A stretch of 64,000 nucleotides of DNA from Cyanophora paradoxa CCMP329. Lineage: Eukaryota > Plantae > Glaucophyta. Where the stretch lies: assembly GCA_004431415.1 (NCBI GenBank), contig QPMI01000056.1, forward strand, positions 310,001 to 374,000, read 5' to 3'. The notes below the pieces were generated by a model. It had not been told where the DNA came from, did no database searches, and saw only the letters and a program-made list of their open reading frames with translations. Below are positions 31,745 through 62,438 of this stretch, one piece after another (the stretch's first letter is position 1; each line of letters begins with the position of its first letter). The translations under genes were made by a program, and so were the position numbers.

Positions 31745-32818
31745 GCGTCCGTGCCGCCGGGCCGAGTCCCAGACTCCCAGCCCTGCAGCTGTCTCTCACC
31801 AATGTCTCTCAGTGCCGGTCCACAGCTGCAGACACGTATACGTACATGTAGGCGTCGTGCGGGCGGGCGACGGCGATAGGTTCACGGTTGAGCGCTTCGC
31901 GCTGCCGACTAGATTTGAACTAGCTGGCCTTTGGCTGCCTCATCATGGCATGATCAGGTCGGTGCCCATGCCATGGACCGCTAGGTGCCTAGGTCAAGTG
32001 GGAAAAAGTCTGCCTTGCCTGGCCCAGTACTAGCTATAGTGGCCTGCCGCAGTGCTGTACGGTATACAGCTACCGCGCCCCTTAAGCAAGACACGGCAGA
32101 GGCAGGCTTGAAATATATATATGCACGTGCACAACTTGGCAAGCCGGCAGCCAATTGTAAGGCCTAGGCAGTGGACCGTCGGACTCCGGGACCGCGCTCC
32201 TGGCCGCACTGCGGGAGTCTGCGGCAGGACCTAGTACTCTGTACTCTGCGATCAAGCCTTGAAGCCTTGATCATGATCATGAAGGGGCCGATCGGATACG
32301 ATATACTAGATGATAATACTGGCCCCCGGGGCCCCGCCGGGCCGGGGGCCGGGGCCCGGGCCCGGCGGGCCCGGCCCCAGGCCCCAGGGCCGCGGCCCTG
32401 GCCATATAATTATAATACTATATATATGATATCGATACGTAGTACGTACTGGGCCACTACTGGCCCCGCGGCCGGGCGGGGCCGGACCCGCCGGGCCGGG
32501 CGCCAGCCGCGGGCCCGGGGCCGCCGCCGGCCCGCCGGCCCCACCGTCCTCCACGATATCGATCGTATCCGCGTTAACGTTCGTGATCATGATCACGATA
32601 TCGCCGAGTCGATTTTATCGCCGATCGATATCGCGAGTCACTGAGTCGTCGTCATATCGATCTTTCATCATTATCGATATCGGATCATCATTCGGATGCA
32701 CACTGCACACACACTGTGAGTCTGTGACACATATATCATAGTTGCAAGTTGAGCATTAATATTGCACATGTACACGTTAAATTAATGCCAAGAGGGCAAG
32801 CGCTGGCCTTGTCTCAGT

Positions 32819-32847
32819 TGTCAGGGCCCTTGGTGTGCACCCCCCCC
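32819..32847 (+). repeat. Left terminal inverted repeat of the giant element
   Basis: TGTCAGGG-N6-GTGTGCA-C8; pairs with 52002-52031. Confidence 0.85.
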
Positions 32848-33403
32848 AGGAGCATTTGCTTCAATTCCCGGAGGGATTGTTGTATATGGTCATGGTGCAA
32901 GGCAGGGGGCGGCGAGCGGGGCGCTCCTTGGTGGAACAAATACGTAGGCACATGCACCGGGCATGGCAGCGGCCAGGCAGGCAGTCCCTGGCAGCCGATC
33001 CTGGCATAGTGAACAGGAGCCCGGGGCGCGGCGCCGGCGAGCTAGTAGCGTAAGAGGTCTTTGTATCATACATACAAGTGGTTCGTGTGGCCGGGCGGGC
33101 TGCGCGCGCGCTGCCCTGGACGCGCGCCCGTCGAGCGTGCGGGCGCCAGCTCGGGCACTCAGATGCATGCCGGCAGCGCTCAAACCTACCACGGATGCGA
33201 TGCTAGGTCGCTGAAGATGCTGCGCGCGCCCGACGCGGCCCAGCACTCGGTTTTGACGACAGCGTCAAGGGAGGGGGGGGTGCAGTGAATTTTTCGACCG
33301 CGGGAACAGCCGGCGGCAGACCGCCGGAGAGCCGCCCCAGCCGGCCAAAACAGCGATAGCCTAGTGCACGGAGCTGCGGGCGCTCATTGCGGTTCGCCTC
33401 GCA

Positions 33404-35601
33404 ATGAGCGGCTTCGAGATTTACATCGACCCGGAGATTCTGGAGGAGTATGTGGCTCAGAAGAGAAAGGCGAGGGAGATCGTGGCTCTGCTGCACGAGG
33501 AGCACCAAATCCAGATTTCGATGCGCGCCCTGCGCTACAAGCTCAGCGACCTCGACCTCTCGACGGACTACTCTCTCTCAAAGGAGGCAGTTTACGATGT
33601 CGTAGAAGAAGCGGCGACTTTGTGCGGCGACGGATACGGCTACGACGCGATCCGCGGGGCGCTCAGGGCCGCGGGCATCACTGTGGCGAAGTCTAGGATT
33701 CAGCACGCCCTCGCGGAGCTGGATCCGACGGGACGCAACGTTCGCCTGGGCGAGTTCGCGAAAAAGCGCAGGTCCATCCACCGCTCGACCTTCTACGGGT
33801 CCGCGCCGCCACGCCGCCCGTGCCGCACCGCCGCGCCGCGCTGACGCACGCCTTGTGCGCAGGAAGTTCTTCGGCTGGAGTGTCGGTTTCGACCAGAACG
33901 AGAAGGCGGTGCCGTACACGAACGTCTACATCTTCGCGGCCGTGGAGAATACGTCCACATTCATCCTGGACTTGCATTGCGGGCTTGCTCGCTCCACTAT
34001 ACAAGGCTACAAACTGTACAAGTGCGCGCGAGGGGCACACGCCTCGCAGCTGCGTGCTCCGTGACCCCAGAGCTGCAGGTCGGTCGTGGAGGAGTTCGGG
34101 GTCTTCGACACGGTCTCCTCGGACTGCGGCGCAGAGAACCGGCTGACCTGGACAGCCCACGTGTGCTCCCTCCCACTCCTCTTGCTCACCTGCGCCGCAC
34201 CTGACCCCCGGGGCGCGGCCACCGAAAGGCGCTCGTGCTGGAGGAAACCGAGCGGCTGATCGACGAGGAAATTGCGAAGGGCAACATCACGGACCCCACC
34301 ACCGGCCTTCCCTGGCGGAGGCTCAACTTCGAAGATCCCAACGACCTGCGCGACGCCGTCATGGTGGGCCCATCCTACCGGAACCCGAAGGTCGAGAAGA
34401 ATTGGAGGTGATGGACACGCCCTCTCCCCACGCATTCCTTCTGTATTTGCTCTCTCCGGTAACACTCCATGGGCAGGTGGGTGAATGTCAAGGTCACGAA
34501 GCCCATCGTGGATGCGGCTGTGATGCTGGAGATGCTCGAGTGGTACAACAGGTGCCCTTCGTGCGACCCGCCAGTCGATGACAGCTACAGACCATGATGG
34601 CCATCCCTATGTACATGTTGGAAGGCTACAATCAGTTACTTCTGGCTGAGACTTGCCAAATTAAGAGCTCTTAATTTGCATGCGTGCATTCGAATTCACT
34701 TGGCATGCATGCTTATTATTCTCCGCTTGCATTCAGACTCGACCCTCAACAGCTGTTTGCCATGGCGAAGGCGACCATGTACGTGATGGAGTACGGCCTC
34801 GCCATCGCGAAGAACAGCTGGAACCACCACGTGAATTCAGGCTCCAAGGAGACGGGGGGCAGAACGGCAGGCCAGACTGGTGGTATGCACTGCGGCACCT
34901 GTTCCCTGTTCTTTAAATTGTGCTGGTCCCAGCTCACTGGGCCCGGGTGCAGGCGCGAGAACATGAACTACATGCGGCCTCTGATGTTCAACCTGCCAGA
35001 GTGGACGGAAATGAAGGATATCCACAACCAGAGGGGCGGCTCTGTCAACGGCTCGGTCCTTGACAGCCGCATGAAGGACCCCGTTGAGCCCGACTTCGTC
35101 GTCTTTGACGAACCCCGCACGACTCTCCGGTGTGAAATTACCTGCCCCGGGCACTCCCTTCATTGTTTATCAAGCTTCCTCACGCTCAGGATGCTGCGGG
35201 ACGAGATGTTCAAGGAATGCAATGAGGACTTGAAGGAGATCTGGAAGCATGTGGTCAACTTCGGGCGGGAGTATGATGAGGAAGCTCCGGGGGTACGTGG
35301 ACGCATTGCGGAGCAGTACTCCAGCAACCCCCTTGGAGGGCTCCCCCGGCTCTTCTTGTTCATGCTGCAGCTGAACGAGCAGCTTTCCGACCTGCACCTG
35401 TACGATGTGTCCATCCCCGGCTGGATGCAGTGGGTGCACGACGCACCCGCCAACAACGACGCGCCCCGTGCCCGGTCAATGCAGGGGATGGGCTTCTTCC
35501 CACCGGACGAGTACCTGCTGGAGCCCCAGGAAATGCGTGCAGCTTTCTTTTATTATGTGCACAATTTCGATCCCCTCGTGCGCGGCCCCCGGGCCCGCTA
35601 G
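33404..35601 (+). CDS. IS3EU-type DDE transposase (Clr5-like/HTH N-terminus plus integrase core), multi-exon, apparently intact
   Basis: N-terminal LRYKLSDL..GYGYDAIRGALR..LAELDPTG; catalytic D (GWSVGFDQNEK, 33891), D (VSSDCGAEN, 34122), E (GPSYRNPKVEKNWR, 34394); downstream SWNHH; the introns I traced through the catalytic core keep the frame. Confidence 0.88.
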
Positions 35602-35752
35602 GCTAGCCCTCTAGCGGCCCTCTAGCCCTAGCTTGATATAGCTAGCTCTGGCTATGTCTAATGAAACGCTCTCTCCTGCTCGCACTGGGCGGGAAAGGAA
35701 ATGGAAACATCCACATACAGCAAAGTGACATTGACCTAGGCCTAGAGCTCGG

Positions 35753-36347
35753 GATGAACATCCAGAGACAGAACTACCTTCAAGCTTCACCTCGGCTGCA
35801 GCCAGCCTAGATGCGAGCAGCTCCCCGACAATACCTGCAGCTCGAGTGAGTTTCCAAATGCCTGCAGGTGCGGGGACGAGCGCAAGGACTCGATGGGGCG
35901 CACGGGGCTCAAGAAGAGGGGGAAGCGCGGCCGATGCAGACGCGCTTGCGTGCGCGCTTTCGCCACGCAGCCGTGGGCCCTTCCGCGACTCCGGCGATCG
36001 TAATGCTCCCGCCAGGCTTGCCGGAGCGCGCGCCGAAGCCGCAGCGGGACGCCACCTGCGGTATTGACGCCATCGTAAATGGCCCGTGCGGCGCCGCGGG
36101 CGGTGCACGGGCGCTGCGCCGGCGATGGGATCGCAGTCTGTGTGTGTACCGTAGGCGGATGCGAGCCTCGGGCGTGCCTATTCGCAGCCCGCCGCGAGGA
36201 ACAGGTGGTGTTGCCAACTGGCACGCCCGAGCGAGGCGGCGCGGGGCGGGGCTGGGCGGCGCCCAGGTCACTGGCGGCTCGCTCGCGCCGAGCTCGCTGC
36301 AGGAGCGCTCGGCGGGCTCCGGGATGGCTGAGTCCGGTGTACCCGGA
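35753..36347 (+). repeat. Long internal inverted repeat, arm A (5' region of the RING-PHD gene)
   Basis: Near-identical core (~35870-36347) plus diverged flank matches the reverse complement of 45146-45787. Confidence 0.9.
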
Positions 36348-36368
36348 GAATTGGGGTACACATCGAAA

Positions 36369-38577
36369 ATGCGCACGCCGCGTCTGGCCTCGCCGGCGCA
36401 GCTCAACACACCCCAAAAGGCGCGCCGTGAAAGCTATATAGCCGAGCGTAACCACTGGATCAAGTACCGTCACGCGGAAGCGATTGCTGACTGGGCAAAC
36501 GGCGGCTTTGAAGGACCGAAGCCGCAGCCGCCGGCGCCACCCGAGGACCTCATAGCTAAGACAGCTGTTGAGGACAGCACCTGCAGACAGCTGTTCGCTG
36601 CGCAGCCCGCCGACCAAGACGTCGACGCCAGCCAGCAGCCAGCGCCAGCCACCGCCATCAGCTGCAGCCCGCCTCAGAAAGCGACCGTTGACGTGCACGA
36701 TTGCGCTCCGCACTCCCCCCTCGCCCCGTCGCCGGAGCCGATCGCCCTTAGTGCAACGGTCACTGCGACGTGCGTTGCCCGCGATCCGTCGCCATCCGCG
36801 CTGATGATACCTGTACAGGAATGAATCAGAGCTAACTGAAAACAAGGCTGAGGAGGCGGCGCCACCCGCGCCGGCTGCGTCGCCGGATGTGCCTGGCCGT
36901 GTGCCCGTGTTCCTGTTCTTCGTTCCAGTCGAGTGCGTGCTCTGCTGCTGCACAACAGTTGTACCAATCTCTTACAGTCGTGCGGCGCCCCTAGGGTCGA
37001 TCCTGTGCCGCCCACGCCCGCTCCTGCTGAAGAAGTTCTCTGCCCCCCACGGAGGAGGAGTTAGCCGAGATGGCGGCTATGGACTTGTCCGAGGGCGCTA
37101 TACAGGAGCTGAGGTCTGCAGATGCTGCTGCATAGCAGATGTTTTTGCTGACAGTCGTGAACGTGCAGAGCACGTGCATCAATTTCGAAGGAGGACAAGG
37201 AGGCTGTTGATCTTCTGATCGGGATCAATGCAACCTGCTCAGTCTGTTTGAGCTCAGTCCAGGATCCTGAGAGAGGGCTCCCTGTGACGGTGGCCGACAG
37301 CGAGGGGAAGATCTGTTCCCACAAGTTCCATGAATCCTGCATCATGGACCTGCTGAAGCACGGGAGGCCGTCCTGTCCTGAGTGGTACATACTAATCCCG
37401 CCCCCCCCCACCCACCCCCTGTGACAGTACCCTTTCTGATCTCTTTACAGTCGCATGGATATCCGCACTGTGGCAAGGCTCAGCGGTGAGAGAGTGAAGA
37501 CCATCTCCGAGGCTGAGTTCAAGGAGTGCAACCAGCACTTCCACGATGACGTCGGCCTTCAGGCAACGGAGGCTTTAATCATTGCGGAGGCAGTAGATGC
37601 GGGCGCAGGTTCTCAGTCTCAAGCACCCCCTCTCCCCCCTCCAGACTACCGCAGGCAGCCTGGACGGCGATGGACTTATCGTTGCCTCGTCTGCGGCGAA
37701 AACTTCCCCAACTACCACAGCCACCCCTACTTGTGCTGCCACAACAAGGAATCCATCTGCCAGCACGAGCCGGGCGGCTGCGGGCGGTCGGAAGAGGCGT
37801 GCATCAAGCGAAAGCACGTCAGGGAGAGATGCATGAACGCCTACCACCCTGAATGTGTGAACTTCGTGGTCGAGAATGGATTCAAAATGATGGAATATCT
37901 CTGTGTGTCCTTTGCATTACATTCGCGATTCAAGACCTCGCTAACGTTTTGTGTAGGCCTCGCCTGCTGCTGCCAGAAATGCCATTTGGCCGGATCGGAG
38001 GATGATCCCTCTCTGAATGGCGAACTCCTCATCTGCGATGGGAGGGCGTGCGGCAGGGCGTGGCACGTCGAATGTGCTGGTTTTTCGGATGCCACCATAC
38101 CCGAGGGCAAGTGGTACTGTGCGTGCCTCTGGATACTGGATGTTCATGCATCGCATTCCTAACACATGCCTTTTAGGCCTTGAGTGCTCGGAGTCAAGGG
38201 AGAAGAAGAGGAGGAGGAAGGAGGAGCGGCGGCAAGCGATGCGGCGTGCAAAGGATGAGCGGCGGCAAGCAACGCGGCGTGCACAGGAGGAGCAGGAGGA
38301 AGAGGAGGAGGAAGAGGAGGAGGAAGAGGAAGAGGAGGAGCAGGAGGCGGAAGAGGAGGAGCAGGAGTCAGAGAACGAAGAGAACGAAGAGCAGCTGAAG
38401 CAGAAGGAGGCGTGGGAACAGCGGAAGCGGCTCACAGCAGCGCGCGTCAGCGCCGCCCCCACTGTCGGCACAAAGAGAGTGCGCGAGGCGAAACAACGCC
38501 AGGCGGCGGCCCTCGCGAAGATTGCCCAGCACAGGCAGCGCACTGTAGAACGTGCCGTAGCGAGCATGAGAAGATAA
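36369..38577 (+). CDS. RING-H2 plus tandem PHD finger protein with acidic coiled-coil tail (alternative in-frame ATG at 36324)
   Basis: CSVC...CSHKFHESC...CPEC; PHD1 CLVC..LCC..CMNAYHPEC..YLCLAC; PHD2 CQKC..LLICDGRACGRAWHVEC..IPEGKWYCLEC; poly-Glu tail. Confidence 0.85.
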
Positions 38578-38623
38578 TCGCAGGCTTTGTATGCATCTGT
38601 GCGCACAATGTAAATATTTTGAT

Positions 38624-40650
38624 TCAGGGCTCAAGCTTGAGATCCTCGTCATCCCGGGCAGGGTCACAAACTACAAGAGCTAGCTTGCGGATCCGTTCCC
38701 TCCACTGCCTGATCCAGCACTCATTCGCACTTCCATCTGGTTTACTTGTGAGCAGCTGTGAGCGGAGAGCAGCCTGCACGTTGAGCTGGCTATCGCTACA
38801 TGTGGGGAACATGAGCGTGTACACAGCAGCCCAGATCCACACACCGCACTGGAGCAAAGTGCATCAGGAAAGACAATACAGATACTCTAGAAAAGAACTC
38901 ACATCGACGCAATTAAACTGAACAGCGTGGTCGTAGATGTTCCCCAGCACACTTACTCTATGGGAGTGGAGCATATCTGCAACCTTACCCAATGTTTTCG
39001 TCCAATTCATTGAATCGGCGAAGGTGCAGACAGTCTGACGTCCTTCTTTGCGGAGGTAGCCGAGAATCCTGTGTGTTGCATCAGACATCGATCTACGGAA
39101 GCAGTCTGCACGGCACACCAGTGTCCAACCTCACGCCCTGTGGGTGTCCTGTGATTTGTGTTGAAGCAAAAGAGCACATGCTTGCCCTGTCGAGCTAAGT
39201 CGACCAGCAGATGAATGTAGGCCGTGTTGTCGAGGAGGCCGAAGGGGCACGGGCTCTCCACATGCCACAGCGGGTTTCTCCATTGACTGCTGACAAGCAT
39301 GAGAAGATAGATGCCTGAGGGCACAGACACACACGGAAGAAGTCGGTCAAAACCATTGATCTGAGACAGAACGAAGAACTGTACGTTTACCTGTCTGCAC
39401 TTGAGAGGTAGTAAGTGGAATCTTGCCGTCTTCGGGGATCATCGCCAAGTCATCAATGACATTCCGCACATACTCTCGTACTGGTTTCTTGGCGTCGCTG
39501 ATCTTCATCGGCTTCAGTTCCTGACGACCTGGCATGGAACTGTCAGTCAATTGCCATCAACTGTGCATTCTGCAGCATACCCGGCTTCTGGTCGGAAGCT
39601 ATGCATTCCTCCCCTTCATCCCATTCATTCCTATCGGTTGTGGCCGGTGTAGGATTTTCGATCTCGACGTCGACCACAGGAATCGACATGCCCACAGAGC
39701 GTAGAGCTGCTGCTCGGGCAGGCCTAATCCTCCGAGAAAGGGGCGAGACGGCGACGGCAGGGCGGGCGGGGGACGGGGAGGTGGAGGCAGGAGGGGTGGC
39801 AGGAGGGGCTGGGGGAGGAACGGAAGGAGGCGCGGGGGGAGGGGCGAAGGGAGAGGCGGAGGGAGGGGCAAAGGGAGAGGCGGGGGGAGGGGCAAAGGGA
39901 GAGGCGGGGGGAGGAGGTGCGGCAAAGGGAGGAGGAGCGGGGGGGGAAACAACCCCATCTGCCGCGGCATCTGCCGCGGGGGGGGCTGCAGCGGGAGGGA
40001 CAGCAACGAGCGCTGCGGCCAGGCGCAGCGGCGGATCCTTCTTGAAGGCGTCGGCAGCGAGCCGGACCAGGAAATCTCTCAGCGTCTCGCGTGGTGCGTC
40101 CTTGTACACGTGCATGTAAACGGCTTGCACTTGCGCGAGCATTTGCACGCATGTGTGCATATGCGTGATCACAGGAGGCCCGCATACTCCGTTTTCCCCA
40201 TAATACACCGATTCCGAGATAGCACACCTGCAGGCAGAGTCAGCGAACACCGCGCACGAGTTACCGCGGCGGGGCGCACGCGCGGCCAGCGATAGCCCCG
40301 ATCCAAAGGAGGATCCTGCAGATCTCGCAGACGTGAACGACACGCTTCGAGCTATCTGTGTAAAGCTGGGTGTTGCGCTTGACTTGCTGCCCCGTCAAGG
40401 GATCGTACACCTGCTTGCTGAACGTGTCCTTCACGCCGAGGATCATGCATGTCTGCTCCAGGTGCCGCACGCCGACGGGCAATCCTGTATCGGGATCCAG
40501 ATCGTAAAAGCCGTTGGCTAGCCCCCAGCTCGGTTGGCCGCCGGCATCCGGGGCAGCACGATTCCTGCGCGCGGCCTTTCCCGCGCCCGGCTCGCTTGTC
40601 TGCGCGTCTGTACGCGGCCTCCGCTTCCGTTCCTCGGCCGGCGCTGACAT
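38624..40650 (-). CDS. Ulp1/SENP-like (clan CE) cysteine protease with N-terminal extension and Pro-rich linker
   Basis: After splicing: VLFCFNTNH...GH|WILGY (His), TFADSM (Asp), VQFNCVD|CGVW (oxyanion Gln and catalytic Cys). Confidence 0.82.
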
Positions 40651-40904
40651 GTCTGCCGTGCCGAAGGCCGCCTATGTGTATTGACGGCTGCCCAAATGGG
40701 CGTCAGCGCGGGAATTCCCGAAGATTGCGCGGGGCGTGCGGGCGTGATTTAGCACAAGAGGGCTAGCACCGCGGTAGGAGCTGAGCAGAAGCCTTGCCGT
40801 TGAGCTCACAGCAGGAGAACGGGACGGCGGGTGCTCCGGCAGGGGGTACCGGTACCGAAGCCCCAGCGCTGGGATCTCGAGCTGGTGGGCAGTTCCGAAG
40901 CAAA

Positions 40905-41613
40905 ATGTATAGGCAGCTGCGTCGTCTCGCTTCGGCCGGAGGTACTGAACTGGTATGTGCGCTGAGTGCGCTGCGCCGCCAGTGGGTCGCCTGTGCGCTA
41001 ACTGCCAGGCTGCACTCGCTGCCGGCAGGTAACGGCAAGGACGCGTGGTGTGAGCGTGCGCTCGTTCGACTGCCGCTCGTGCCGCCAGTATCGCTGCGAG
41101 TAAAGTTTGCCGCAGACCCCGCGGCGAGGCCGTCTGCCGCGCACCACCGCTGCCATCGGCATCGATCGCCGCGCGGGCTGGCTTCTGCCGAAGCAGTCGG
41201 GCATCTGGCGCGCCGGGACCGGCCTCTTCGTGGAGCGGCCGGGCGTGCGCCGTGGTGCAGTTGTTTTCAGACCAGGTGACCTCATCACCCCGTACCGCGG
41301 GACGATCTACACGAAGACTCAAGCGCTGGAGATTTTCGCTCGCGAGCCCTCGCGTCGCCTCTACAGCATCTCGTTCAAAGGCAAGTACGGGCACACGTAC
41401 GTCCTCGACGCCACCGACTTTCCGGAGGCGAGCCTAGCGCGCTTCGCAAATGACGCGGATAAGCCCGGGACTCACCCCCGCTTCTCGAACAACGCCTTCT
41501 TCCGCGTGGAGAAGGACGGGCAGGTCTGGCTAGTCGCCGACTGCGTCCTCAAGCAGGGGATGGAGATCTTCGTCCCGTACGGGCAGCTGTACTGGAGCGT
41601 GCTGGCTCGCTAG
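40905..41613 (+). CDS. Stand-alone SET-domain lysine methyltransferase of viral/bacterial type; start uncertain
   Basis: KQSGIWRAGTGLF, FRPGDLITPYRG, VLDA, LARFANDA, NNAFF, LKQGMEIFVPYGQLYW; no pre-/post-SET Cys clusters; two phase-0 introns upstream of the SET exon (41116-41613). Confidence 0.85.
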
Positions 41614-41878
41614 CTCTCTTCTCGTATCTCACGCGCTATCCTGGCGTTGTAGACCTCCTTTTCTCTCTTTTCCGGTTCTGTTTCTTCTCCCATCCAAATG
41701 AACCCAGTCTCTCTCATGCCAGCAGCTAGCTCTGGGATGGCAGACTGGCCTGCGGCTGCGCACGCGCCAACGCGACACCGCATGCACTGTGCGTCGAAGC
41801 GGGATGCGATGGCAAAAGAAAGAGCGCGGCTCTTGATGGGATGGGAAGAAATGTGACGCGAGTGAGCGCGCGACGTGT

Positions 41879-43171
41879 CGCGGCAACCGCGGCATTTTGA
41901 GTCTATCCGCGGCAACTCCGCGGCAGTTACGTGAGAATTAATTAACCACGAAATTAAAAAAGGGGGTAGTCCAAATGACGCGGCATCTTCGCGGCATTCC
42001 GCGCTACTAACAAATTCTGCGGCAATTACCGGTAGATGTCGTTAAATCCGGCAGTTGGCGACAGAACGCGGCATCCAAGGCGTCGTCGCGCTGCTTTCGC
42101 GGCTCTCGCCCGAGAATTAATTAACCACGAAATTAAAAAGTGGGGGTAGTGTGATTGACGCGGTGTTTCCGCGGCACTCCGCGCTACTAGCGGCAATTAC
42201 TGCCACACGTCGTCAAATTCGGTAGTTAGCGTCAAAATGCGGCATCCGCGATGGAATCGCGTTTTCTACGCGACGGTTTCCCAAGAATTAATTAACCACG
42301 AAATAAAAAAGGGGGGTAGTCCAAATAACGCGGCAACTTCGCGGCAGTTTTCCCTAACCGCGGCATGATTTGACAATCGCGGTACATTGCGGTTGTTCGC
42401 GGCAAATACGAATCGCGGCGTCAATTCTGGCTTGCCATCTGGCGCGGATCGTGAGCTTCATGATCATGAGGCGCGTTTTCTCCCGCGTCATGATGCCTGC
42501 ATGTCCAGAGGTACTCTATAAATATTTTAATCATGTTTAGGAGGAGGCGGGATTGTGCATGCAGACCACAGACACATGTGTCGAACAGAAAAGTACAGGA
42601 TGAACTGTCAGACTGACAATTCATGAATTGCCATAAAGCACTGAAGCTAGGGTGGTCTGTGGAAAAAGCGCACACGTTCTAAGCATGATTAAAATACTTA
42701 TATAGTTCCTCTGAACATGCCTGCATCATGATGCGGAGGAAACGCGCGTCATGATCATGAAGCTCATGATCTGCGCCTCATCGGGACATACGAAGCGACG
42801 CCGCGGTTCTGTAGAGCCGCAAAATGCCGACAAACCTCGCGAGAACCGCTAATTGCCGCTAGTAGCGCGGAGTGCCGCGGAAACACCGCGTCAATCACAC
42901 TACCCCCACTTTTTAATTTCGTGGTTAATTAATTCTCGGGCGAGAGCCGCGAAAGCAGCGCGACGACGCCTTGGATGCCGCGTTCTGTCGCCAACTGCCG
43001 GATTTAACGACATCTACCGGTAATTGCCGCAGAATTTGTTAGTAGCGCGGAATGCCGCGAAGATGCCGCGTCATTTGGACTACCCCCCTTTTTTAATTTC
43101 GTGGTTAATTAATTCTCACGTAACTGCCGCGGAGTTGCCGCGGATAGACTCAAAATGCCGCGGTTGCCGCG
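41879..43171. repeat. 1.3-kb quasi-palindrome with an iterated AT-rich motif
   Basis: 41879-42199 is an almost perfect reverse complement of 42850-43171; inner imperfect IR ~42448-42540 / ~42679-42777; five copies of AGAATTAATTAACCACGAAAT(T/A)AAAAA..GGGGGTAGT. Confidence 0.95.
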
Positions 43172-43252
43172 GATGACGCGGATTGTCGCGAACGTTCAAA
43201 GAACGCGTTCTGCCGCGGAATGCCGCTCGGGGGTTCACACTACCCCAAGACG

Positions 43253-44115
43253 ATGGCGGGAGCGTCGGTGGACAGCAGCACGCAAGTGGAGCGGCCTTGC
43301 TGCAACGAGAAAGTCATGACGATCGTCGAGCACAGTCTGAATGTGCGTTGCCTTTGTGGTCCGCGCGACGGTAGCGGGCGCCACCAGCTATCTGATGAAC
43401 TTCGGAATTCCCACAGCACCTCAACGAGAGGCTTGCCGATAAGCAAGCGGAGGTGGACACTTTGCACCGAAAGGTGGCCGAGATGGAGGCCAGGGAGAGA
43501 GCGAACGAATTCGTCGGACCGCAGATTCTGGGACTGACAAAGGTGCGCGTGCGATGCGCATGCGGCCGCTCAGCATGCCTCAGCTCTGCGGCAGGACGTA
43601 TGCGACAGGTACCGCGAGGTGAAAGAGGAGCTGAGCAAGTCTCAGAAGGCGCTGGCCGATGCGAACGCCCGAATCCGTGAGGTCGATCTGGGACTGACAA
43701 AGGTGCGCGTGCGATGCGCATGCGGCCGCTCAGCATGCCTCAGCTCTGCGGCAGGACGTATGCGACAGGTACCGCGAGGTGAAAGAGGAGCTGAGCAAGT
43801 CTGAGAAGGCGCGGGCCGATGCGAACGCCCGAATCCGTGAGGTCGAGGAGGCGAGCTCGATCTTCGCAGTACGATGCTCGGAGCTCGCAGTGCGATGCCA
43901 CGTGCCTTAGTTCTGCTCGCAGATCCTTGGCAAGAGGATGCGCGACGAATTGGAGTGCGGGTGCGCACGAAGGACAGTGCGTGGTCATTCCATTTGCTGC
44001 GCCTAGACGTGCCGCGCCTTTGCTGATAAATGTGCCCGATGCAGATCTCAAGGACATCATGGCCTACAGAGCGGGTTGCGACTACATCGGTGTGATGCTG
44101 GATGCACGCCCTTAA
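43253..44115 (+). CDS. Small coiled-coil protein with a tandemly duplicated exon+intron
   Basis: HLNERLADKQAEVDTLHRKVAEME; a 160-bp unit (52-nt intron + 108-nt exon DVCDRYREVKEELSKS..ADANARIREV) occurs twice at 43527-43846. Confidence 0.65.
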
Positions 44116-44349
44116 TGAGATCTTTGTAGGGCTTCAACTCCGAGAGATCCCCTCAGGCTTCATTGTTTTTCTGTTCAGATGCTTTTAAGTCCATATTGAT
44201 TGCCTTTCTTGCCCGGCGGCCCCTGTGGCTTGTGCAGCGTGTCAAAGGAGCAAAAGTAGCTGCTTAAAGAATAATTGTACACAAATGAAAGGGCACAAGC
44301 AAGGAACGTGCAAAGTGAAGGATGCGAAGGGCACATGCACACGAGTCAC

Positions 44350-45124
44350 CTACTCCATCATTGACCTGTACATATCTATAGGTCTGTAGATTTTCTCGGG
44401 CTGGTCGGGACCGAGGGTCCAGCCGTAGGCAAATGCGAAGTACCTGTGAGCAAGCAGCGCCTCAGCGGAACAGCGGAACGCATTGCAGCGGCGCGGACCC
44501 GTTGTATCGGGGGCGCGCGCGGGCGTAGTTGACGAAGCGATCGCGGAGCTCCTTCCGGCCCTGCACAGCTGGGTTGTAGGGCACGGGCATGTGTGACCTG
44601 CACACCGCGGCAAGGCACGCGTGAGCCAGATTGGGATAGACTGGGGATATACTAGTGCAGCATGGCAGATCGCACTCTATCTTCATGGCCGCGGCGCTGG
44701 CGACGCGCTGAATCCATGACTCCGACGCTTTGATTCCTCGCTCGCGGAGGATCGCGCGGATCCCGCGGACCTCGCGCCACACCGGATCGAACACCGCGAG
44801 GGCCTTCCGAATCCTCGACTTCGACGCTGTGATGCCTTGGGCGCGGAGGGCCGTGCGGATCATGCCGCCGCCGAAAAGGGGGCCATTTAAGTTAACAACC
44901 TCCAGCACGGCGACACAAAGGACATTGAAAGAGAGAGCGTAGTTCGTTGAGAGGCCAAGCTCGCGGAGCCTGGAGCGCAGAGCGCGCCTGTTGAGGTTGA
45001 TGCCGTGCTGCTCGGCTAGCAGAGTCAGTATCTCAGCGGCCGTCTTCCTCTGGTCCACGTAGCCGCGCAGAGTCTCCTCCTCGATGCTGCTTGGCTGGGC
45101 CGGGCTCGCGCCACCCGCGGCCAT
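44350..45124 (-). CDS. Truncated paralog of the element's transposase (DNA-binding part only, ends just after the first catalytic Asp)
   Basis: LRGYVDQRKTAAEILTLLAEQHGINLNRRALRSRLRELGLSTNYALS aligns to LEEYVAQKRKAREIVALLHEEHQIQISMRALRYKLSDLDLSTDYSLS; last exon AYGWTLGPDQPEK vs FFGWSVGFDQNEK, then stop. Confidence 0.8.
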
Positions 45125-45145
45125 TTCGCTGCGTACCCAACACCT

Positions 45146-45787
45146 CCCGGGTACACCGGACTCAGCCATCCCGGAGCCCGCCGAGCGCTCCTGCAGCGAG
45201 CTCGGCGCGAGCGAGCCGCCAGTGACCTGGGCGCCGCCCAGCCCCATCCCGCGCCGCCTCGCTCGGGCGTGCCAGTTGGCAACACCACCTGTTCCTCGCG
45301 GCGGGCTGCGAATAGGCACGCCCGAGGCTCGCATCCGCCTACGGTACGCACACAGACTGCGATCCCATCGCCGGCGCAGCGCCCGTGCACCGCCCGCGGC
45401 GCCGCACGGGCCATTTACGATGGCGTCAATACCGCAGGTGGCGTCCCGCTGCGGCTTTGGCACGCCCTCCGGCAAGCCTGACGGGAGCATTACGATCACC
45501 GGAGTCGCGGAAGGGCCCACGGCTGCGTGGCGAAAGCGCGCACCGTGGCACGCAAGCGCGTCTGCATCGGCCGCGCTTCCCCCTCTTCTTGAGCCCCGTG
45601 CGCCCCATCGAGTCCTTGCGCTCGTCCCCGCAGTTGCAGCTAGGCATATGGACACTCACGCGAGCTGCAGCTAGGCATATGGCTATAGCTAGGCAGTCTC
45701 TGGTCAAGGTAGTTCTTTCTCTGGAGCTGCTCGCATCTCGGCTAGCTGCAGTCTCTGGTCAAGGTAGTTCTTTCTCTGGATGTTCAC
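45146..45787 (-). repeat. Long internal inverted repeat, arm B (5' region of the transposase paralog)
   Basis: Reverse complement of 35753-36347, with small internal duplications at ~45635-45780. Confidence 0.9.
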
Positions 45788-45877
45788 GAGTACAGAGTAC
45801 AGAGATGATTGCACACCCCTCAACCCCCGGACGCGTGGTTACGAAAGGACAAGAAAGCATTGCACTGAAGAAACATG

Positions 45878-47856
45878 CTAGGGTTTAGCATCTGGATTGT
45901 TAGTGTCTAAGACCCGGCTGTTCTTGCTTTTTTTGACTATGGCGAGGCCACCATTGCCGTTGCTTTCGACTATTGCTGACCACACCTGTATTCCTTCCTT
46001 GTTGAAGGCTTTTTTCTCTTTCCACATCCTGGTCGACATGTCGAGCTTGAGTGGAATCGTGTTGCGCCCGTTCTCCAGAACCCGCTTCCAAATGACTGCA
46101 TGCCTCTGCTTCTCCTCCAACTTGCACACGCCTGCTGGAATCTGGAAATGAACGTCCACAACGTTCTTCCTTCCGGCCTGGTCTACAACCCGAATTTCAG
46201 GCAGCGGGATCTCATCGGTCTCGCTGCGATTTCGATCATTCACGTGTAAAAGAACACACAATTGAAGGGAAGGGCTACACGCACGTGATTCGTCTTTTCT
46301 TCCTTCCTGTGCTCTTCTCCTTGGGGCCCTTGCTGCTGCCCCCCGCCTTCGATCGCTTCGATTCTGAAGAAAGTTAGGATACAGACGGGAGTCTTTCGGG
46401 TTCACACGTGCCATCATCGGCCTCGACGCCGTCAGGAGCCACATCCTCGTCCTCGTCCTCGTCCTCCTCTTCCCCCCCCCCTCCTCCTCCTTCTGAAGAT
46501 CCACAGGGGGGGGTGGAGGTATAGCAGCAGGCGGGGCAGGAGGCAGGGCAGGAGGCGGGGAAGGGCCCCGCCCTGCTCCAGCCAACGCTTTGTCCGCCAT
46601 GGCATTGAGAAGGAGGGCCCGCTCCTCTGGAGTGCGGCGACGAGCCTCCTCTTCCTCCTCCTCCTCCTCATCTGCTGACCCGTGAGCTGCAGCCGGACCC
46701 GACGGAATTTAGTACGCGCAAGCACAAACGTGCCCTGGCTCGTCCGATGCATTCTCCTGCTCTCCAGCCCGGCAATTGCCTTCTGTGAGCCGTGATCAGG
46801 ATGCGGGCAGGAGAGTGAAGGGAAGGACACAAACCACGCTGTCGATGTTGTGGGAGGTTTTGAGATTCTCCATAAAGAGAGCACGCAATTTAGTCTCGGA
46901 TTTGAACTGTTGATTCACCAGGAATACGATGAACGGTTTAGCTTCGGCCAGAGAAATCGGCTGTTTCTCAACCACGTGCTTGCTCATGAGACTCTCCATA
47001 TCGTTCATCTTATCGTCAGGAAACACAACGTCCCCGGCTTCCCGCTTGCACATCTCGGCACACGAAAGCCTGCAGATACGAGTCAGCGGAGCGCAGACGG
47101 GGTTCACCATCAGAATGCTCACAGATCTGCGGCGAGGGACAAGGAAGCCTTCGTCCTCTGCTGGGCACATTTCGTGGCTTTCTCGGCGACGAACTTCGTC
47201 GCGCTCCCCAGCAAGAGCTTGGTTTTTTGGTTGCCAGGAAGAGTTTCCGCTGGCCCCACGGTCTTCTGGATCCACTGCAAGTTGAGTTGGTCTGTGTGCT
47301 GCTCGATTTTGTTCAGCAGTGAACATGCCGCGCGCGCCTGTCTGCGCGGGCCGAACCTGCTGCGGGGTTCGCTTTGGCTTGGACGTGGCGCCGATGCCCC
47401 GCCCGCGCTGCCTGTGGTGCAGCTGCTCCGCCGACTTCGCCTGCTCCGCGAGCAGCTTCGGCACATCGCAGGGGTTGGTGCTGATGAAGTAGTATAGATT
47501 TCCCTGCCGGATGTGCTTGTCGAATATCTGCGCGCATTCAGAAGCAGGCGAGCATCGACGGGCGGCGAACTGCCGACCTGCTGGTTGGGCACCCAGTGGC
47601 CAGCGCCGCAGAGCACCACGTAGAGTTTGAGCAAGGGCCGTGCGAATTCGGGAACGTCGAAGATCGCCGCCACTTCGGCGATGAAAGCATCTAGTTTCGC
47701 CGGTGCCAGTGACACGGTGTTCTCGCCGTGCTTCGATATATCCTTCACGGCTGTTACGATGAGGTCGGGGAGCTGCTCACCCGGCTGCTCAAACTGCGCG
47801 GCCGCGACAGCCGCCACGGGCGGCGCAGGAGCACCGGCGGCCGCAGCCGGGAGCAT
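45878..47856 (-). CDS. Unknown multi-exon cargo protein with acidic and Pro-rich tracts
   Basis: Coding-like exons (LPDLIVTAVKDISKHG..LLKLYVVLCG; EAKPFIVFLVNQQF; IRVVDQAGRKNVVDVHFQ..) separated by short GT-AG introns; no family recognised. Confidence 0.6.
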
Positions 47857-47899
47857 GGTAACGACGCGTACCCCCTGGCTTGACGACGCCGTCAAACCC

Positions 47900-48504
47900 A
47901 TGGACTCGCGCAACCCGGCACCTGCCGCGGCCGGCGTCTTTGAGTCCGGGCCGCTTCGCGGCAAGGAGTTCACTTTCCGGCGGCCTGCAGCAGCCCCGAG
48001 CCGGCGTCCGCTGCGGGCGCCGCTCCCTCCGAACGCGAGCTCATCGCCGACCTCCAGCGGCAGCTGGAGGCGCTCACGGTGGAGGTGCGCACGATAAAGA
48101 CGGAAGTCGAGGAAGGTACGCGGCCGCCGTCGCCCGTGGCGCGTCCTCGTTTTGAACCGCCATCCGCGCCGAGCTAGGTCAGCGCCCTGCGCCCCCCGCA
48201 GCCCGCCGCGCGCAAGCTCGGCGCAACGCATCTCCTCCTCCACCGAACGAGAAGTACACCGGGAGTCCGTCGACGGGCAAGATCCACAAGGTCTCCAAGG
48301 TCTCGGGCCAGAACCCGACGTGCCCGGCCCTCCGCGTGCGTACAGCTCGCGTGCCCCGGCTTTGAGGCACTCAGTAGCTAAAGGCGGTGCGCGCAGATGA
48401 AGGGGAAGATCCTCTGGCCCGAGTTCAGCTCGGAGGAGGCGCTCCGGGCCTCGGACCCCAAGTACAACAAGGAGGGCGCTCGCTGCCGCAACTGCTGGCG
48501 CTAG
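47900..48504 (+). CDS. Small coiled-coil plus Ada-like zinc-binding domain protein (needs one extra C near 47976); full protein not in the ORF track
   Basis: ELIADLQRQLEALTVEVRTIKTEVEE; spliced C-terminus YTGSPSTGKIH...TCPALR|MKGKILWPEFSSEEAL...ARCRNCWR* fits the Y.GS...K.H..C...F.S.EE....R.CxxC pattern. Confidence 0.6.
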
Positions 48505-48915
48505 GCGCTAGCCGTGCGGGGGTCGCTCCCCTCCCGCGGCGCTTCCTGTTCCGCGTGAAGCTCTGTGAACGTGTCGCTGAGTCGTGCTCTGAACACGAGA
48601 TGTTGTTGTCAACTTGGGAAGGGAACCTTGAAGGGATGCATGCATGGCCAGGCACGCAGAGAGGAGAGCGCAGGCACACATACGAAATCAATCCAGATTG
48701 CACACAAATACATACACAGCGATAAACAGCCGACATAGATACATACACAGCGATAGACAGCACATTACTATAGATAGCAAACACATGGATACATATATAG
48801 AGTTGCGAGCCCAGCGGGAGAGCTCGGAATGGACATGAAGGAAAATAAAATCCTACCAAGAGCACAGGCTATCTGCAGCTACTGCTGTGCAGAGCTAGCA
48901 GCTACTTCAGAGCAA

Positions 48916-51900
48916 CTACTGCTGCCCCTTCTCCTGCTGCGCCTTCTCCTTTGCGGCCTCCAGGTCGAGCCCGCCGCTGGCGAGGACGGCGTAGTTCATC
49001 GTGCGGGCACGCTTGCGCGAACCCTCCGCCGCCGGACGGGAGCTCGAGGCGGCCGGGGTGTCGAGAGGGAGGGGATCGGAAGAGGAGGAGCCGAGCTTGG
49101 GGTCAGGGAGGGGCGGGGCCGCAGGGAGGGCCTGGGCTGCTGCCTCCTTCTCCGTCTTGGACCGCCGGCCCCGCTTCGGAGGCGCCGGCGTTTTCTCCAC
49201 GTGTTCCACGTCCTCCACGGGCCCGTCCTCCTCCTCGCAGTGGCAGAAGTCCTTGGACCCCTGCCGGCACACGCCGAAGCAGGGCCCCTGGTAGCACTTG
49301 TAGCCGAGCCAGTCGCAGACGAAGACGTGCTTGCTGGTCCTGCTGAACTTCTCCACAATTTCGTCGTGCTCCGGGTTGCCGATGCGCTTGTAGCCGCAAA
49401 CACTGCAAGGATGGACGAGGAAAGCAGACTTCCCTGCTCCAGAAGCATGAGACAGGGGACGGCGAGGGGCAGAAACGGGCGTACCGTTGCGGGCATCCTT
49501 CATCGCGTCCTCGAGCTTGTCCTCCGGGACGACGTACGGCCGCAGCTCCAGGTTCACGAGCTCCCGATGGGCATCCTCGATGCGGAGCTGCTGCAAGAGT
49601 CAGGCAGTCCCTGCAAGGGTTGGGTTGGAGCCTGAGCTGTCACAGACCGAGAGCGGGCGAGTCATGCCGTCCCGCAGCTTGAGGACGTCGGTGGGGCACA
49701 TCTTGTGGAACATGGCGGCGTGGCACATTGCAATGCCGTTGACATACGACTGCAGGAGGGCGCCGCCCGACGTGGATTGACCAGCCGCTCCGGGTCCTTG
49801 CGGTTGAGGGAGTATTTCTGCTCAGCACCAGAGTGAGATTCGGTGGACAGAGGGGAACTAAGCAGGAAGGGCAGTCTGAGAACCTTTTCGGGCGTAGTCA
49901 TCGTCCGCAGGATGGCATGCTGCGACCCCGCTCGAAGTACATCGATGTGAGCACCACACCGATGTAGTTGCAGTTCGCCTCGTAGGCCATCACCTCGGTG
50001 AGCTCTGCACGGGGCACATGCATCAGAGAAGGGCGCGGTGCATCGGGTGCCAGGAGAGCACAACGCACTGGACACTGGGAAGTTGTCAGGGGTGATTTCA
50101 TTCACGGCGTCCTGGAAGTTGTTGGGCCGCCGGCCCGCGCCCTTCGGCGGCTTGTTGGGGACGAACATCTTGTACACTTCCAGGGGCTCCTCAGCGTTCA
50201 GCTTCTTCGTCATGAACGCTGAGAATGCATCTGCAGATAGAAGAGCAGGTGCTAAGGTTAGACTGAAGAGGGACCTTTACAGAAAGGAGCACAAGCCAAG
50301 AAAGGAGAAAGGAGCACAGACCAGCGAGCTGCGTGTAGGGGTGCGGATCAAGCATGCCTTCGATCTCGATTGTGATGGTCGTTGGATCCTTCCGGACGTC
50401 CCGAGCTTGAAGACGACGTTGTACCGGGGCTCCTGGAAGTCGGCCACACCACGGCTCCGGCGGGCGGCCAATTCAGCCTTCTTGTTTACGAACTGCTCGA
50501 AAGCAAGCGGTCAGTGTGCTCTAGAGGCCAGAGAAGAGGAATCAAAGGGCATGCACGCACGTCCCTGACAATCTTGGCGGTGGGTTCGCCATGAAGATGA
50601 TGTGCTGGCCAGTCGGTTTGGCCAAGTGCTTGTTCACGAAGAGGTTCCAGTCCTGCATGCTGACAGGGTCCTGCGGGTGTTCAAAAAGCATGCAGTGAGC
50701 ACAGAGAAAGAAGGAAAAAAGGAAGAGGTGGATGGGGAAGAAGAGGACGCAATGCATGCTGCTAGGCGGCTAACCTGCATGACCCACATCTTCTCGATGT
50801 TGTCCAGGGGACGACATGCATCTTCTTCGCGGGGTTGCTCGGATCCACGATCTCGGTGATGACAGCCGTGGCAACAGTCAGCGTGTTCCCCACTCCGGCT
50901 GGTTCGCGCTGCGGTTCGTGATGTTCCGCGCCATCTCGAAGCCCTTCGGGTCGAAGTAGTTCACGAAAATCTCCTCGCTCAGGATGTGTACTGCGACGAA
51001 GACGCGCGATCAGGTTCGAAAGGAAGACCCGCGCAATCACGGAAGCAACGAGCCGAGGATCGCGACGCACTCGGTGCGGAACTCTTCCGAGGATCGCGAG
51101 CATGTCGTGGAGAGGCTTCCAGGCCGCGTCCGCGGCCGGGGCGTAGGTCGCGAATGAGAAGGGCGTAGGCTTGACTGCCTCGATTCCCTTTCCGCTCTTC
51201 ACCGCGGCACCCGCCGCAGCCATGACCTTCTCTTTCTGAGTGACCGCGGCCGCGGCGGCCTTGGCCTTCGCATTCGTCGTCACCTGGGCGCGAGGGGCCA
51301 CCTTGCGAGGGGTCGAACCCTCCGGCTGCGCGTATAGCGTGAGGAGGATCGCATGGCGACGCGAGGATGCGGGCGCACGATCGTGGGCCCGCCCGAGCCT
51401 GTGCGCGTGGCGCCAAAATTTGAATGTCAGTTGGGCGCCAAAATTTGAATCGACATGGCGGCGATTGCGAGCGCACCGCGCCCCGAGCTCGCGACCGCGT
51501 CCGCAAGGCCCTGACTGGAGCGGCCGCTAAACCGGACCCCGAAGGTGGCCGCCCGTTGGGCGGGCTCGGCCGGCGCGGCGACCTCGGGCTGGTCGTCTGC
51601 GCGCCGAGCGGTTAGCGCGGGCGGCGGTTAGCGTGAGCACGCGCACCCATTGCCGTGTAGTAGACGCCCTGCTTGCCCGTCTTCCAGCCCGAGGTGGAGC
51701 ACAGGAGGCTGATGTCTTCGAGCTCCTCCGACGTGCCGTCGTGGCGCTTCTCGAGCACGAATTCCATGTTCTCGGCGTCCAGATTCTGAAACACAGTCGT
51801 CTTGAGCAGCCGCAGGACAACGTCAACGGGGCGGGCGTTGAGCATGTCCGGCTTGAAATGCACAGGCGGCGCATCCGGGCTGCCCTTCCTGTGGATCACG

Positions 51901-51959
51901 ACACGTTCGATTTCTCCCGCGGGCACGGAGCCCGCCGCGGGTGCCGCCGGTGCCGCCAT
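48916..51959 (-). CDS. Large unknown cargo protein with C-terminal CW-like zinc finger; several 1-bp frameshifts (error or decay)
   Basis: Exon chain from MAAPAAPAAG..; C-terminal HPCSVCGYKRI...VFVCDWLGYKC..CFGVC..CHC, followed by a PKRGRRS basic motif. Confidence 0.6.
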
Positions 51960-52001
51960 GTTCAAAAATTTGCCGCCGAGTTTGAATTGACGTATACCGG
52001 G

Positions 52002-52031
52002 GGGGGGGGTTGCACACGTTAGTCCCTGATA
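52002..52031 (-). repeat. Right terminal inverted repeat of the giant element
   Basis: G-run-TTGCACACGTTAGTCCCTGATA followed directly by TSD CTCAGT. Confidence 0.85.
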
Positions 52032-52442
52032 CTCAGTGAAGTTGGCAACTTGGCAAGTTGAAAATCAATCCAAATGATGGCAAGATTCGCAACTTGCAAG
52101 TTGCAAGTTCTTTCCAAGGCTTTCACCGGGCCTCGGCAATGAATATTATTGCAATTGCGGCCGCGTTAATAATTGCGGGCCTTTTGCGGCGATCGAAGTC
52201 CGCGAGGATAATATCCGGAATCCGAGATCCCCAGTACATGATTCGGAGTCTGATGGTAGGCAATGCTAGGGCTAGCTATAGCATTGCTACTAATTTGCTA
52301 GGCATTGTAGCTTAGTAGGCAATGCTAGGCATGCGCATTGGCCCAGTGGTACTAATTTGGAACTTGGAAGCCGCATATTCCCCCCATAGTACCTAGCCGC
52401 CGCGGCCGTGCCGCCCGCGGCCCGCCGCCCGGGGCCCGGGCC

Positions 52443-52907: not shown

Positions 52908-53338
52908 TAGGGTTACCGTATGTCGGAAATGTCGGTCACCCACCTTCCGACATCGACATTGTCGAATGTCGGTTGGATGTCGGTGCGATCCGACAGAGGG
53001 GGGGGTAGGGGTCATCTCCGCCGGCCGGCGGCAGAATGCGCCATAAATTATAAATTAAGGCTTCTGGCGCTCCAGGAAGTTATTCTAAGCATGTCTTAAC
53101 ACTTTCCCCACGTTGGGAGACCATAGGAGCGTGTGTTCTAGGTGCGCGACGGGCGCCCGGCGGGCCGGCGACGGCATGGAGGGGGCGAGAAATGCATTAA
53201 ATATATATAAAATGCATTATTTATATTAATATTTCCGATATGTCGGATCGACATTCGGTCACCCTCGCCGACATCGTACCGACATCCGAAATGTCGAACC
53301 GAATGTCGGAGCTTCGACATGTCGGTACGGTAACCCTA
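52908..53338. mobile_element. hAT-like MITE of the same family as 2228-2659, opposite orientation, no TSD retained
   Basis: TAGGGTTACCGTA...TACGGTAACCCTA; internal AAGGCTTCTGG.GCTCCAGGAAGTTATTCTAAGCATGTCT is the reverse complement of ~2457-2496. Confidence 0.85.
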
Positions 53339-62421: not shown

Positions 62422-62438
62422 GTGAGTCAAGCATCTAG

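Follow-up and report, generated by a model that had tools for sequence, protein, structure and literature searches.

DNA-binding-only truncated transposases are classic self-regulators of mobile DNA; in IS3 OrfA and the KP protein of the P element, they are made from the transposase's own gene. In IS911, IS3 and IS2, OrfA is the unshifted product of the OrfAB transcript; its sequence is that of the OrfAB N-terminus, and it has a leucine zipper for heteromultimer formation. The KP and 66-kDa repressors of the P element are near-identical derivatives of the resident transposase, coming from deleted elements or from alternative splicing. Dominant-negative truncated transposases of eukaryotes arise by deletion or rearrangement, and inhibition is possible without prior selection. 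The Myb-like protein of PIF/Harbinger elements also binds DNA and is required for transposition; it is unrelated to its transposase in sequence.

The window analyzed here, the whole 64-kb stretch of Cyanophora paradoxa DNA, is GC-rich. It contains a mobile element that encodes a full-length transposase and, on the opposite strand, a diverged and truncated paralogue, which we call tnpN.

32819–52031, no strand: host element, 19,213 bp, with ends TGTCAGGG... and ...CCCTGATA, imperfect TIR of ~29 bp and TSD CTCAGT
33404–35601, plus strand: the element's spliced transposase, the full-length paralogue, with the HTH exon followed by D1, D2, E and NSWNHH in successive exons

The host element is flanked by the perfect 6-bp TSD CTCAGT at 32813–32818 and 52032–52037. 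Its TIRs, 5′-TGTCAGGGCCCTTGGTGTGCACCCCCCCC and the reverse complement TATCAGGGACTAACGTGTGCAACCCCCCCC, match at ~20 of 29 bases, with one TG end and one TA end; no further occurrence of the terminal motif was found inside the element. A 6-bp TSD and TA..TA termini, occasionally TG..CA, together with TIRs are hallmarks of IS3EU/GingerRoot elements (PMC10045372, PMC6839031), and the host element agrees with this group in its 6-bp TSD and its termini. The transposase gene begins 585 bp from the left element end (33404), and its exon 1 encodes two helix-turn-helix (HTH) units. In the translated frames, the motifs GFDQNEK (D1), SSDCGAEN (D2, ~34110), KVEKNW (E, ~34390) and NSWNHH were recognized by eye. 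Exon 1 has a sub-threshold NCBIfam IS3-transposase match, and exon-by-exon scanning of the transposase gave no Pfam or NCBIfam match to an rva_4/rve core; because the exons were scanned one by one and not as a joined model, motifs and context are the basis of the DDE assignment. Right of the element (54153–64000), the window contains 99%-identical dispersed and tandem repeats (155-nt units; 850-nt and 1.56-kb copies), and one 72% inverted pair (2228–2659 versus 52908–53338) brackets most of the window; both are unrelated to tnpN.

tnpN is located on the minus strand. It encodes 213 residues in three exons, with the ATG at 45124 and the TAG at 44352–44350, exactly as placed (44350–45124, opposite strand, diverged paralogue) in the preliminary description, which was made from the sequence alone.

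44676–45124, minus strand: exon 1, with start codon, Clr5-type HTH, a second, HTH_21-like HTH and, in frame, a diverged tandem repeat of the latter; maps exactly to EukProt P0001–P0004
44598–44675, minus strand: intron 1, 78 nt, GT–AG, in frame and stop-free; spliced out in all four published models with tnpN
44499–44597, minus strand: exon 2, SHMPVPYNPAVQGRKELRDRFVNYARARPRYNG
44444–44498, minus strand: intron 2, 55 nt, GT–AG, phase 2 in a Gly codon; homologous to transposase intron 33799–33862
44350–44443, minus strand: exon 3, with the first-catalytic-strand remnant (YFAFAYGWTLGPDQPEK), 13 unrelated codons and TAG

Exon 1 of tnpN aligns with transposase positions 33425–33745 (plus strand) over 107 gap-free codons, with identities of 48.6% at the amino acid and 64.9% at the nucleotide level; against transposase exon 1, the E values are 4e-24 in tblastn and 1e-15 in blastn. 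Two more matches are collinear with it. One covers 15 of 15 nt at the splice donor (44502–44488 versus 33795–33809); the other one is 36 nt long, with 78% identity (44428–44393 versus 33869–33904), and encodes YGWTLGPDQPE in tnpN and FGWSVGFDQNE in the transposase, 7 of the 11 residues being identical. tnpN retains the two HTH units and the strand with the first catalytic Asp (YGWTLGPDQPEK versus FGWSVGFDQNEK in the transposase); the HTH region and the GWxxGxDQxEK motif, which had been noticed before, correspond to the 107 gap-free codons and the 36-nt match. The donor of intron 2, GTCCGCGCCG, is identical at 10 of 10 positions in the two genes, in the same codon and the same phase, and one CGCTGA motif precedes the acceptor in both the 55-nt intron of tnpN and the 64-nt intron of the transposase. 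As the intron is common in position, phase and donor, tnpN goes back to a gene that was already spliced and was duplicated at the DNA level. The lengths of both tnpN introns, 78 and 55 nt, are close to the mean intron length of 86 bp in the C. paradoxa genome (PMC6704402).

That the similarity or the ORF of tnpN is a chance product of GC-rich sequence, with no paralogue present, is hardly credible. The window is full of long spurious ORFs; however, this reading is refuted by the 107 gap-free codons at E 4e-24, the three collinear matches and the shared intron, and family-profile matches also back tnpN as a paralogue. tnpN is a genuine diverged, truncated paralogue of the element's own transposase.

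No similarity to the transposase was found in tnpN past ~44393; the break falls 3–4 codons after DQPEK. From there, the frame runs through 13 unrelated codons (IYRPIDMYRSMME) to the TAG at 44350; the tail is AT-richer and the GC content of the 3′ flank is 0.47. A second copy of transposase exons 3–6, the later catalytic exons, was not found in the whole 64-kb window. With the D1 strand as its only catalytic motif and exon 3–6 homologues absent from the window, the predicted tnpN protein cannot be catalytic. The preliminary description, which called it catalytically dead and had it stop before the second D and the E, was right on both points: homology ends at ~44393, and the transposase has SSDCGAEN at ~34110 and KVEKNW at ~34390. 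Compared to the transposase, tnpN has two insertions, each of them in frame, one of 3 codons before GW and one of about 42 codons. Within the ~42-codon insert, the second HTH unit is repeated in tandem and in frame, in diverged form; the score of this internal duplication was reached by 3 of 5000 shuffles, and among its 24 codons, 8 are identical, 2 differ synonymously only and 14 differ non-synonymously. The ATG of tnpN has A at −3 and G at +4, and the spliced model is open over 214 intact codons. The earlier statement that the ORF is open despite strong divergence holds for this spliced model, although long ORFs are frequent in GC-rich DNA such as this; in place of one continuous ORF, the published models have two introns here. 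GC1/2/3 is 0.64/0.44/0.79 in the tnpN exons and 0.65/0.51/0.83 in the lineage-specific insert, which is coding-like.

For searches with the spliced protein, we used the stored published model (P0001, residues 461–673); our own concatenation of the exons was used for the model check, composition and simulation. The exon-1 ORF of tnpN matches Pfam Clr5 (PF14420) at 22.9 bits, compared to the gathering cut-off of 22.3; the same region scores 19.5 bits inside the full model P0004, and transposase exon 1 scores 20.2 bits. The match to HTH_21 is weak, 18.6 bits for tnpN versus 14.5 for the transposase. For Clr5 and HTH_21, the HTH profile scores of tnpN are equal to or above those of the active transposase. 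For tnpN, the NCBIfam matches were all sub-threshold, to the HTH of IS630 and IS3 transposases; in both paralogues, the second HTH can be aligned, weakly, with that part of the NCBIfam IS3-transposase model which corresponds to HTH_21. In the single-sequence AF2 prediction, tnpN forms two three-helix units, with pLDDT of 72–85 for the first and 61–71 for the second; for residues 135–213, the last ~80 of the protein, pLDDT is <50. PDB searches by sequence and by Foldseek gave no significant match to tnpN; the rows for paired domains and the SETMAR DNA-binding domain have E values of at least 1. By features and shape, most of the ESM Atlas clusters nearest to tnpN consist of eukaryotic proteins labeled "integrase core" that have PF24764 rva_4; the scores are weak (cosine 0.85–0.92, TM ~0.3). 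Many of these neighbors have a Clr5 domain, and a few are short proteins, either stand-alone Clr5 or unnamed; in the ESM Atlas, Clr5 domains head many rva_4 integrase-core proteins and occur also in short stand-alone proteins. The sole four-heptad hydrophobic run of tnpN is located inside HTH1, and looking through the protein for a leucine zipper or another multimerisation motif gave none. Taken together, these matches indicate that tnpN is the predicted N-terminal DNA-binding part of an IS3EU-type transposase.

Pairwise comparison of tnpN and the transposase under the GY94, F3x4 codon model gave an omega of 0.37 over the 107 codons (LRT versus omega = 1, 10.7) and of 0.40 with the motif exon added (LRT 10.1). 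The NG86 dN/dS is 0.70; because a GC3 of 0.79 makes NG86 unreliable, this value was set aside and the codon-frequency-aware ML estimate was preferred. In neutral simulation of the 214-codon frame, the probability of finding no stop was 0.39 at 0.05 substitutions per site and, with indels not counted, 0.055 at 0.2 and 0.019 at 0.3 substitutions per site; the low values at d = 0.2–0.3 make it unlikely that this copy has been dead since the duplication. The tnpN part is identical in all four annotated genomic copies that have it, and as all copies are identical, selection after the truncation is not shown by them. The pairwise omega, the in-frame indels and the shared intron fit a recently truncated full-length transposase equally well, and thus give no date for the truncation. 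The catalytic-strand remnant is the best-kept segment of tnpN, with 78% nucleotide identity and 7 of 11 residues identical, versus 65% and 49%, respectively, in the HTH region. Since this strand is useless in an HTH-only protein yet best kept, the truncation appears recent relative to the paralogue split; the numbers, which are too small for significance, hint that most of the divergence of tnpN preceded the truncation.

Relatives of tnpN were searched for in several ways. One word search with the 220-aa exon-1 ORF found no stand-alone relative among candidates of 121–385 aa. With the 397-aa frame as query, no close full-length relative was found among annotated C. paradoxa proteins of 218–695 aa; the search returned only models that contain tnpN itself. 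The profile search with the full model and transposase exon 1 returned only upstream-gene models, swamped by the words of that gene, and yielded neither an outgroup nor a published model of the transposase gene; the metagenome scan with the two-sequence alignment gave 527 pattern matches, 0 of them confirmed.

Upstream of tnpN lies one module that is repeated, in inverted orientation, behind the transposase gene.

45125–45786, minus strand: arm B, the upstream module of tnpN, non-coding, probably promoter and 5′ UTR; inverted repeat of 35755–36368
35755–36368, plus strand: arm A, the same module, preceding another cargo ORF (ATG at ~36370, MRTPRLASPAQ...)

Arms A and B are 94–98% identical over ~525 nt, with the identity fading ~25 nt before each ATG; faint similarity extends into the first codons (tblastn of P0001 residues 437–487 against 36297–36452, E 1e-5). 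Arm B has no codon periodicity, its GC1/2/3 being 0.69/0.72/0.71. On the simplest reading, the ~660-bp repeated arm would be a common promoter and 5′-UTR module. The tnpN frame is also open for 177 codons further, through non-coding upstream DNA. One and the same reading frame is open through both non-coding arms (45125–45655, minus strand, and 35868–36368, plus strand), giving ORFs of 397 and 318 aa; GC-rich non-coding DNA here thus readily yields long spurious ORFs and merged models. We also considered the arms as the ends of a nested element and rejected this, as their outer edges show no 6-bp duplication (TCGGGA versus CGAGTA) and the host TIR motif was not found inside them. The cargo ORF behind arm A (36370–36824, plus strand; MRTPRLASPAQLNTPQKARRESYIAERN...) has the same 660-bp upstream module as tnpN. 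Its first ~27 codons are faintly like those of tnpN (ASPAQ; ESYIAERN versus GYVDQRK), and it may be a second, shorter transposase 5′-end remnant joined to unrelated coding sequence.

Several other repeats are located inside the element. One near-perfect palindrome of 1.3 kb (41879–43171; outer arms 99–100% complementary) lies near the element middle, with internal repeats ~170–180 bp apart, and is followed by one perfect-looking 160-bp tandem duplication (43527–43846). The ORF at 43819–44115 (plus strand) converges on the 3′ end of tnpN, with 234 nt between the stops. Its end and that of the inverted ORF at 49898–50101 (minus strand) encode related C-termini (VPDADLKDIMAYRAGCDYIGVMLD versus VPRAELTEVMAYEANCNYIGVVLT), with 83-nt arms that are 76% complementary. 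We rejected one composite model with two IS ends, as tnpN starts 6.9 kb from the right end of the element, not ~585 bp.

Five published BRAKER1 models on four contigs (P0001–P0005) span the tnpN locus and map exactly to the window. The tnpN protein is present in 4 of the 5, one per contig, and forms the C-terminal end in all four; all four join it to the upstream same-strand gene through one 795-nt intron (45985–45191), and no stand-alone gene model was found for tnpN. The upstream gene (47856–45878, minus strand) encodes an acidic, NLS-rich protein without Pfam domain and has its own stop at 45878. Its published models differ among copies in one proline-rich stretch, with alternative frames in P0003, P0006 and P0007, which suggests indel differences or unstable predictions. 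P0006 ends in RSSGWEARRSS, which is encoded nowhere in the window; at least one genomic copy therefore differs downstream of the upstream gene.

Three readings of tnpN have to be weighed. Taken literally, the published models would make it the C-terminal DNA-binding domain of a 673–731-aa fusion, in which the upstream gene (47856–45986) splices across arm B into 45190 and reads through the ATG. P0001–P0004, which come from four contigs, all join KEGIQ to ERSAGSG with GT donor 45985 and AG acceptor 45191, and the frame is open over the junction. However, the 795-nt intron that this implies is nine times the mean intron of 86 bp, and the 754 nt from the upstream stop at 45878 to the tnpN ATG match the mean intergenic distance of 770 bp (PMC6704402). 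Different from the tnpN exons, the spanned arm is without coding periodicity, and the same arm precedes the ORF that follows the transposase stop, where fusion is implausible. The upstream ORF stops by itself at 45878; the models vary among near-identical copies, and the upstream-gene model P0006 ends independently. The authors of the C. paradoxa gene models noted that these need manual curation (PMC6704402). We regard the fusion as improbable; the annotated joining of the upstream gene and tnpN is probably a merged-prediction artefact. That tnpN is a separate gene, as proposed at the outset, is probably correct, given its own 5′ module, the implausible 795-nt fusion intron and the non-coding arm. 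As such a gene, it could be a retained regulator or adaptor, driven from arm B: a two-HTH protein that would bind element DNA at the ends or at internal sites, and would either damp transposition in the manner of OrfA or KP or tether the SET/PHD chromatin cargo. The intact spliced ORF, the in-frame indels, the omega of 0.37–0.40, the coding-like composition and the family-like HTH scores are consistent with this, and so are its own 660-bp upstream module, 98% identical to that of the second cargo gene, and the 754 nt from the upstream stop to the ATG, compared to the genome mean of 770 bp (PMC6704402). Proteins with an rva_4 integrase core usually begin with a Clr5-type HTH, stand-alone Clr5-domain proteins occur in fungi, and in S. 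pombe, Clr5 acts in heterochromatin silencing (Hansen et al. 2011, as reported in PMC5919735). However, the identity of all copies does not show selection after the truncation, and an HTH region at 49% identity need not recognise the ends of the resident element. A long-selected regulator would not keep a vestigial catalytic strand and a junk tail; neither a leucine zipper nor another motif for multimerisation was detected in tnpN, it has no stand-alone gene model, and a second gene of this kind is unreported in the IS3EU/GingerRoot papers (PMC10045372, PMC12730594, PMC6839031). We therefore hold such a role to be possible but doubtful.

The reading that we prefer, although tentatively and at a little under an even chance, is that tnpN derives from a second, diverged transposase gene of the IS3EU/GingerRoot type, of which the 5′ third is left after a cut by rearrangement, and that it is carried passively. 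The homology, the truncation point, the shared intron, the missing catalytic exons and the identity between copies are observed; as for the rearrangement, its recency and the passive carriage, we infer the following course. What is left of this gene would be its 5′ flank and start codon, the two HTH units, an ancestral intron and the D1-bearing strand with which the catalytic core begins. A rearrangement inside the 19.2-kb element would have severed the gene just past D1 and eliminated the catalytic exons that follow; the frame now runs 13 codons into unrelated AT-richer DNA and stops, the next feature being the 3′ end of a convergent gene on the other strand. With the element copied in one piece and its family young, there would have been no time for decay, and the fragment could persist without need of function. 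It would probably still be transcribable from the 660-bp module and translatable into 213 residues with two HTH units and no catalytic activity. Passive carriage fits the end of homology at ~44393, with the unrelated, AT-richer tail and the 3′ flank of GC 0.47, and the lack of a second copy of exons 3–6 in the 64-kb window. The shared intron points to DNA-level duplication of a spliced gene, the purposeless catalytic remnant is the best-kept part, and the tnpN part is identical in models from four contigs. In a young fragment the stop-free frame would be unsurprising (P = 0.39 at 0.05 substitutions per site); there are other rearrangement scars inside the element (the 660-bp inverted arms, the palindrome and the tandem repeats), and AF2 pLDDT is <50 for residues 135–213. 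On the other hand, tnpN has 214 intact codons, A at −3 and G at +4 and two short introns of the canonical type; the indels of +3 and about +42 codons both keep the frame, GC1/2/3 is coding-like even in the lineage-specific insert, omega is significantly <1 at 0.37–0.40, and the HTH profile scores are at least those of the active transposase. For a copy that died at the duplication, a stop-free frame would have had a probability of about 0.02–0.06 at d = 0.2–0.3. The preliminary description had named, as one of the things that would overturn a regulator, other copies that show a broken remnant of a second full-length transposase: the anatomy fits such a remnant, with the break after D1, the 13 unrelated codons and the catalytic exons gone, but no close full-length relative was found among the annotated C. 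paradoxa proteins of 218–695 aa.

If tnpN works, it would be the case of a large eukaryotic transposon that has such a regulator as a distinct diverged gene beside chromatin-modifying cargo, and it would offer a manageable system for studying how the DNA-binding domains of transposases turn into chromatin factors of the host type. In its strongest form, which we think rather unlikely, an autonomous eukaryotic cut-and-paste transposon would keep a diverged DNA-binding-only transposase paralogue as an independent, spliced gene under a promoter module of its own, would use it to throttle transposition or to tether the SET/PHD cargo, and would represent a living intermediate toward stand-alone Clr5-type chromatin factors. 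If tnpN does not work, it would mark past recombination between two IS3EU lineages; even then, it would show that published C. paradoxa models merge neighboring genes within the element.

Like IS3EU/GingerRoot elements, the host element has a 6-bp TSD, TG/TA termini, a spliced transposase and an HTH N-terminus lacking HHCC; like the fungal IS3EU elements that bear TET/JBP, it carries cargo genes (Repbase; PMC10045372, PMC6839031, PMC12730594). Different from GingerRoot (3.9–12.9 kb), it is 19.2 kb in size, and a second, truncated transposase paralogue such as tnpN is not reported in these papers for the described members of IS3EU/GingerRoot. Like Clr5-domain proteins (PF14420), tnpN has a first HTH at the gathering score, although marginally (22.9 versus 22.3; 19.5 in P0004). 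Like the second ORF of PIF/Harbinger, it is a separate non-catalytic, predicted DNA-binding protein beside the transposase; unlike the Myb-like protein, it is a transposase fragment. Like IS3 OrfA, tnpN is a transposase N-terminal HTH region without the DDE core, in the same element as the full transposase. Unlike OrfA, it comes from a spliced locus of its own, 9 kb from the transposase gene and on the other strand, with 49% identity and its own introns; a programmed −1 frameshift and a common transcript are absent. It also reaches further than OrfA, through HTH_21 and the first catalytic strand, and no zipper was found in it. Of the interpretation first offered, the structural part stands, that is, a diverged, non-catalytic, N-terminus-only paralogue that looks translatable, whereas the IS3 OrfA mechanism does not fit a separate opposite-strand locus at 49% identity without frameshift. 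Like KP of the P element, tnpN is a truncated eukaryotic DDE-type transposase that keeps the predicted DNA-binding N-terminus; unlike KP, it is a diverged paralogue beside an intact transposase in an autonomous element, with an HTH region that is only 48.6% identical. If tnpN is functional, the KP repressor of the P element would come closest to it in function.
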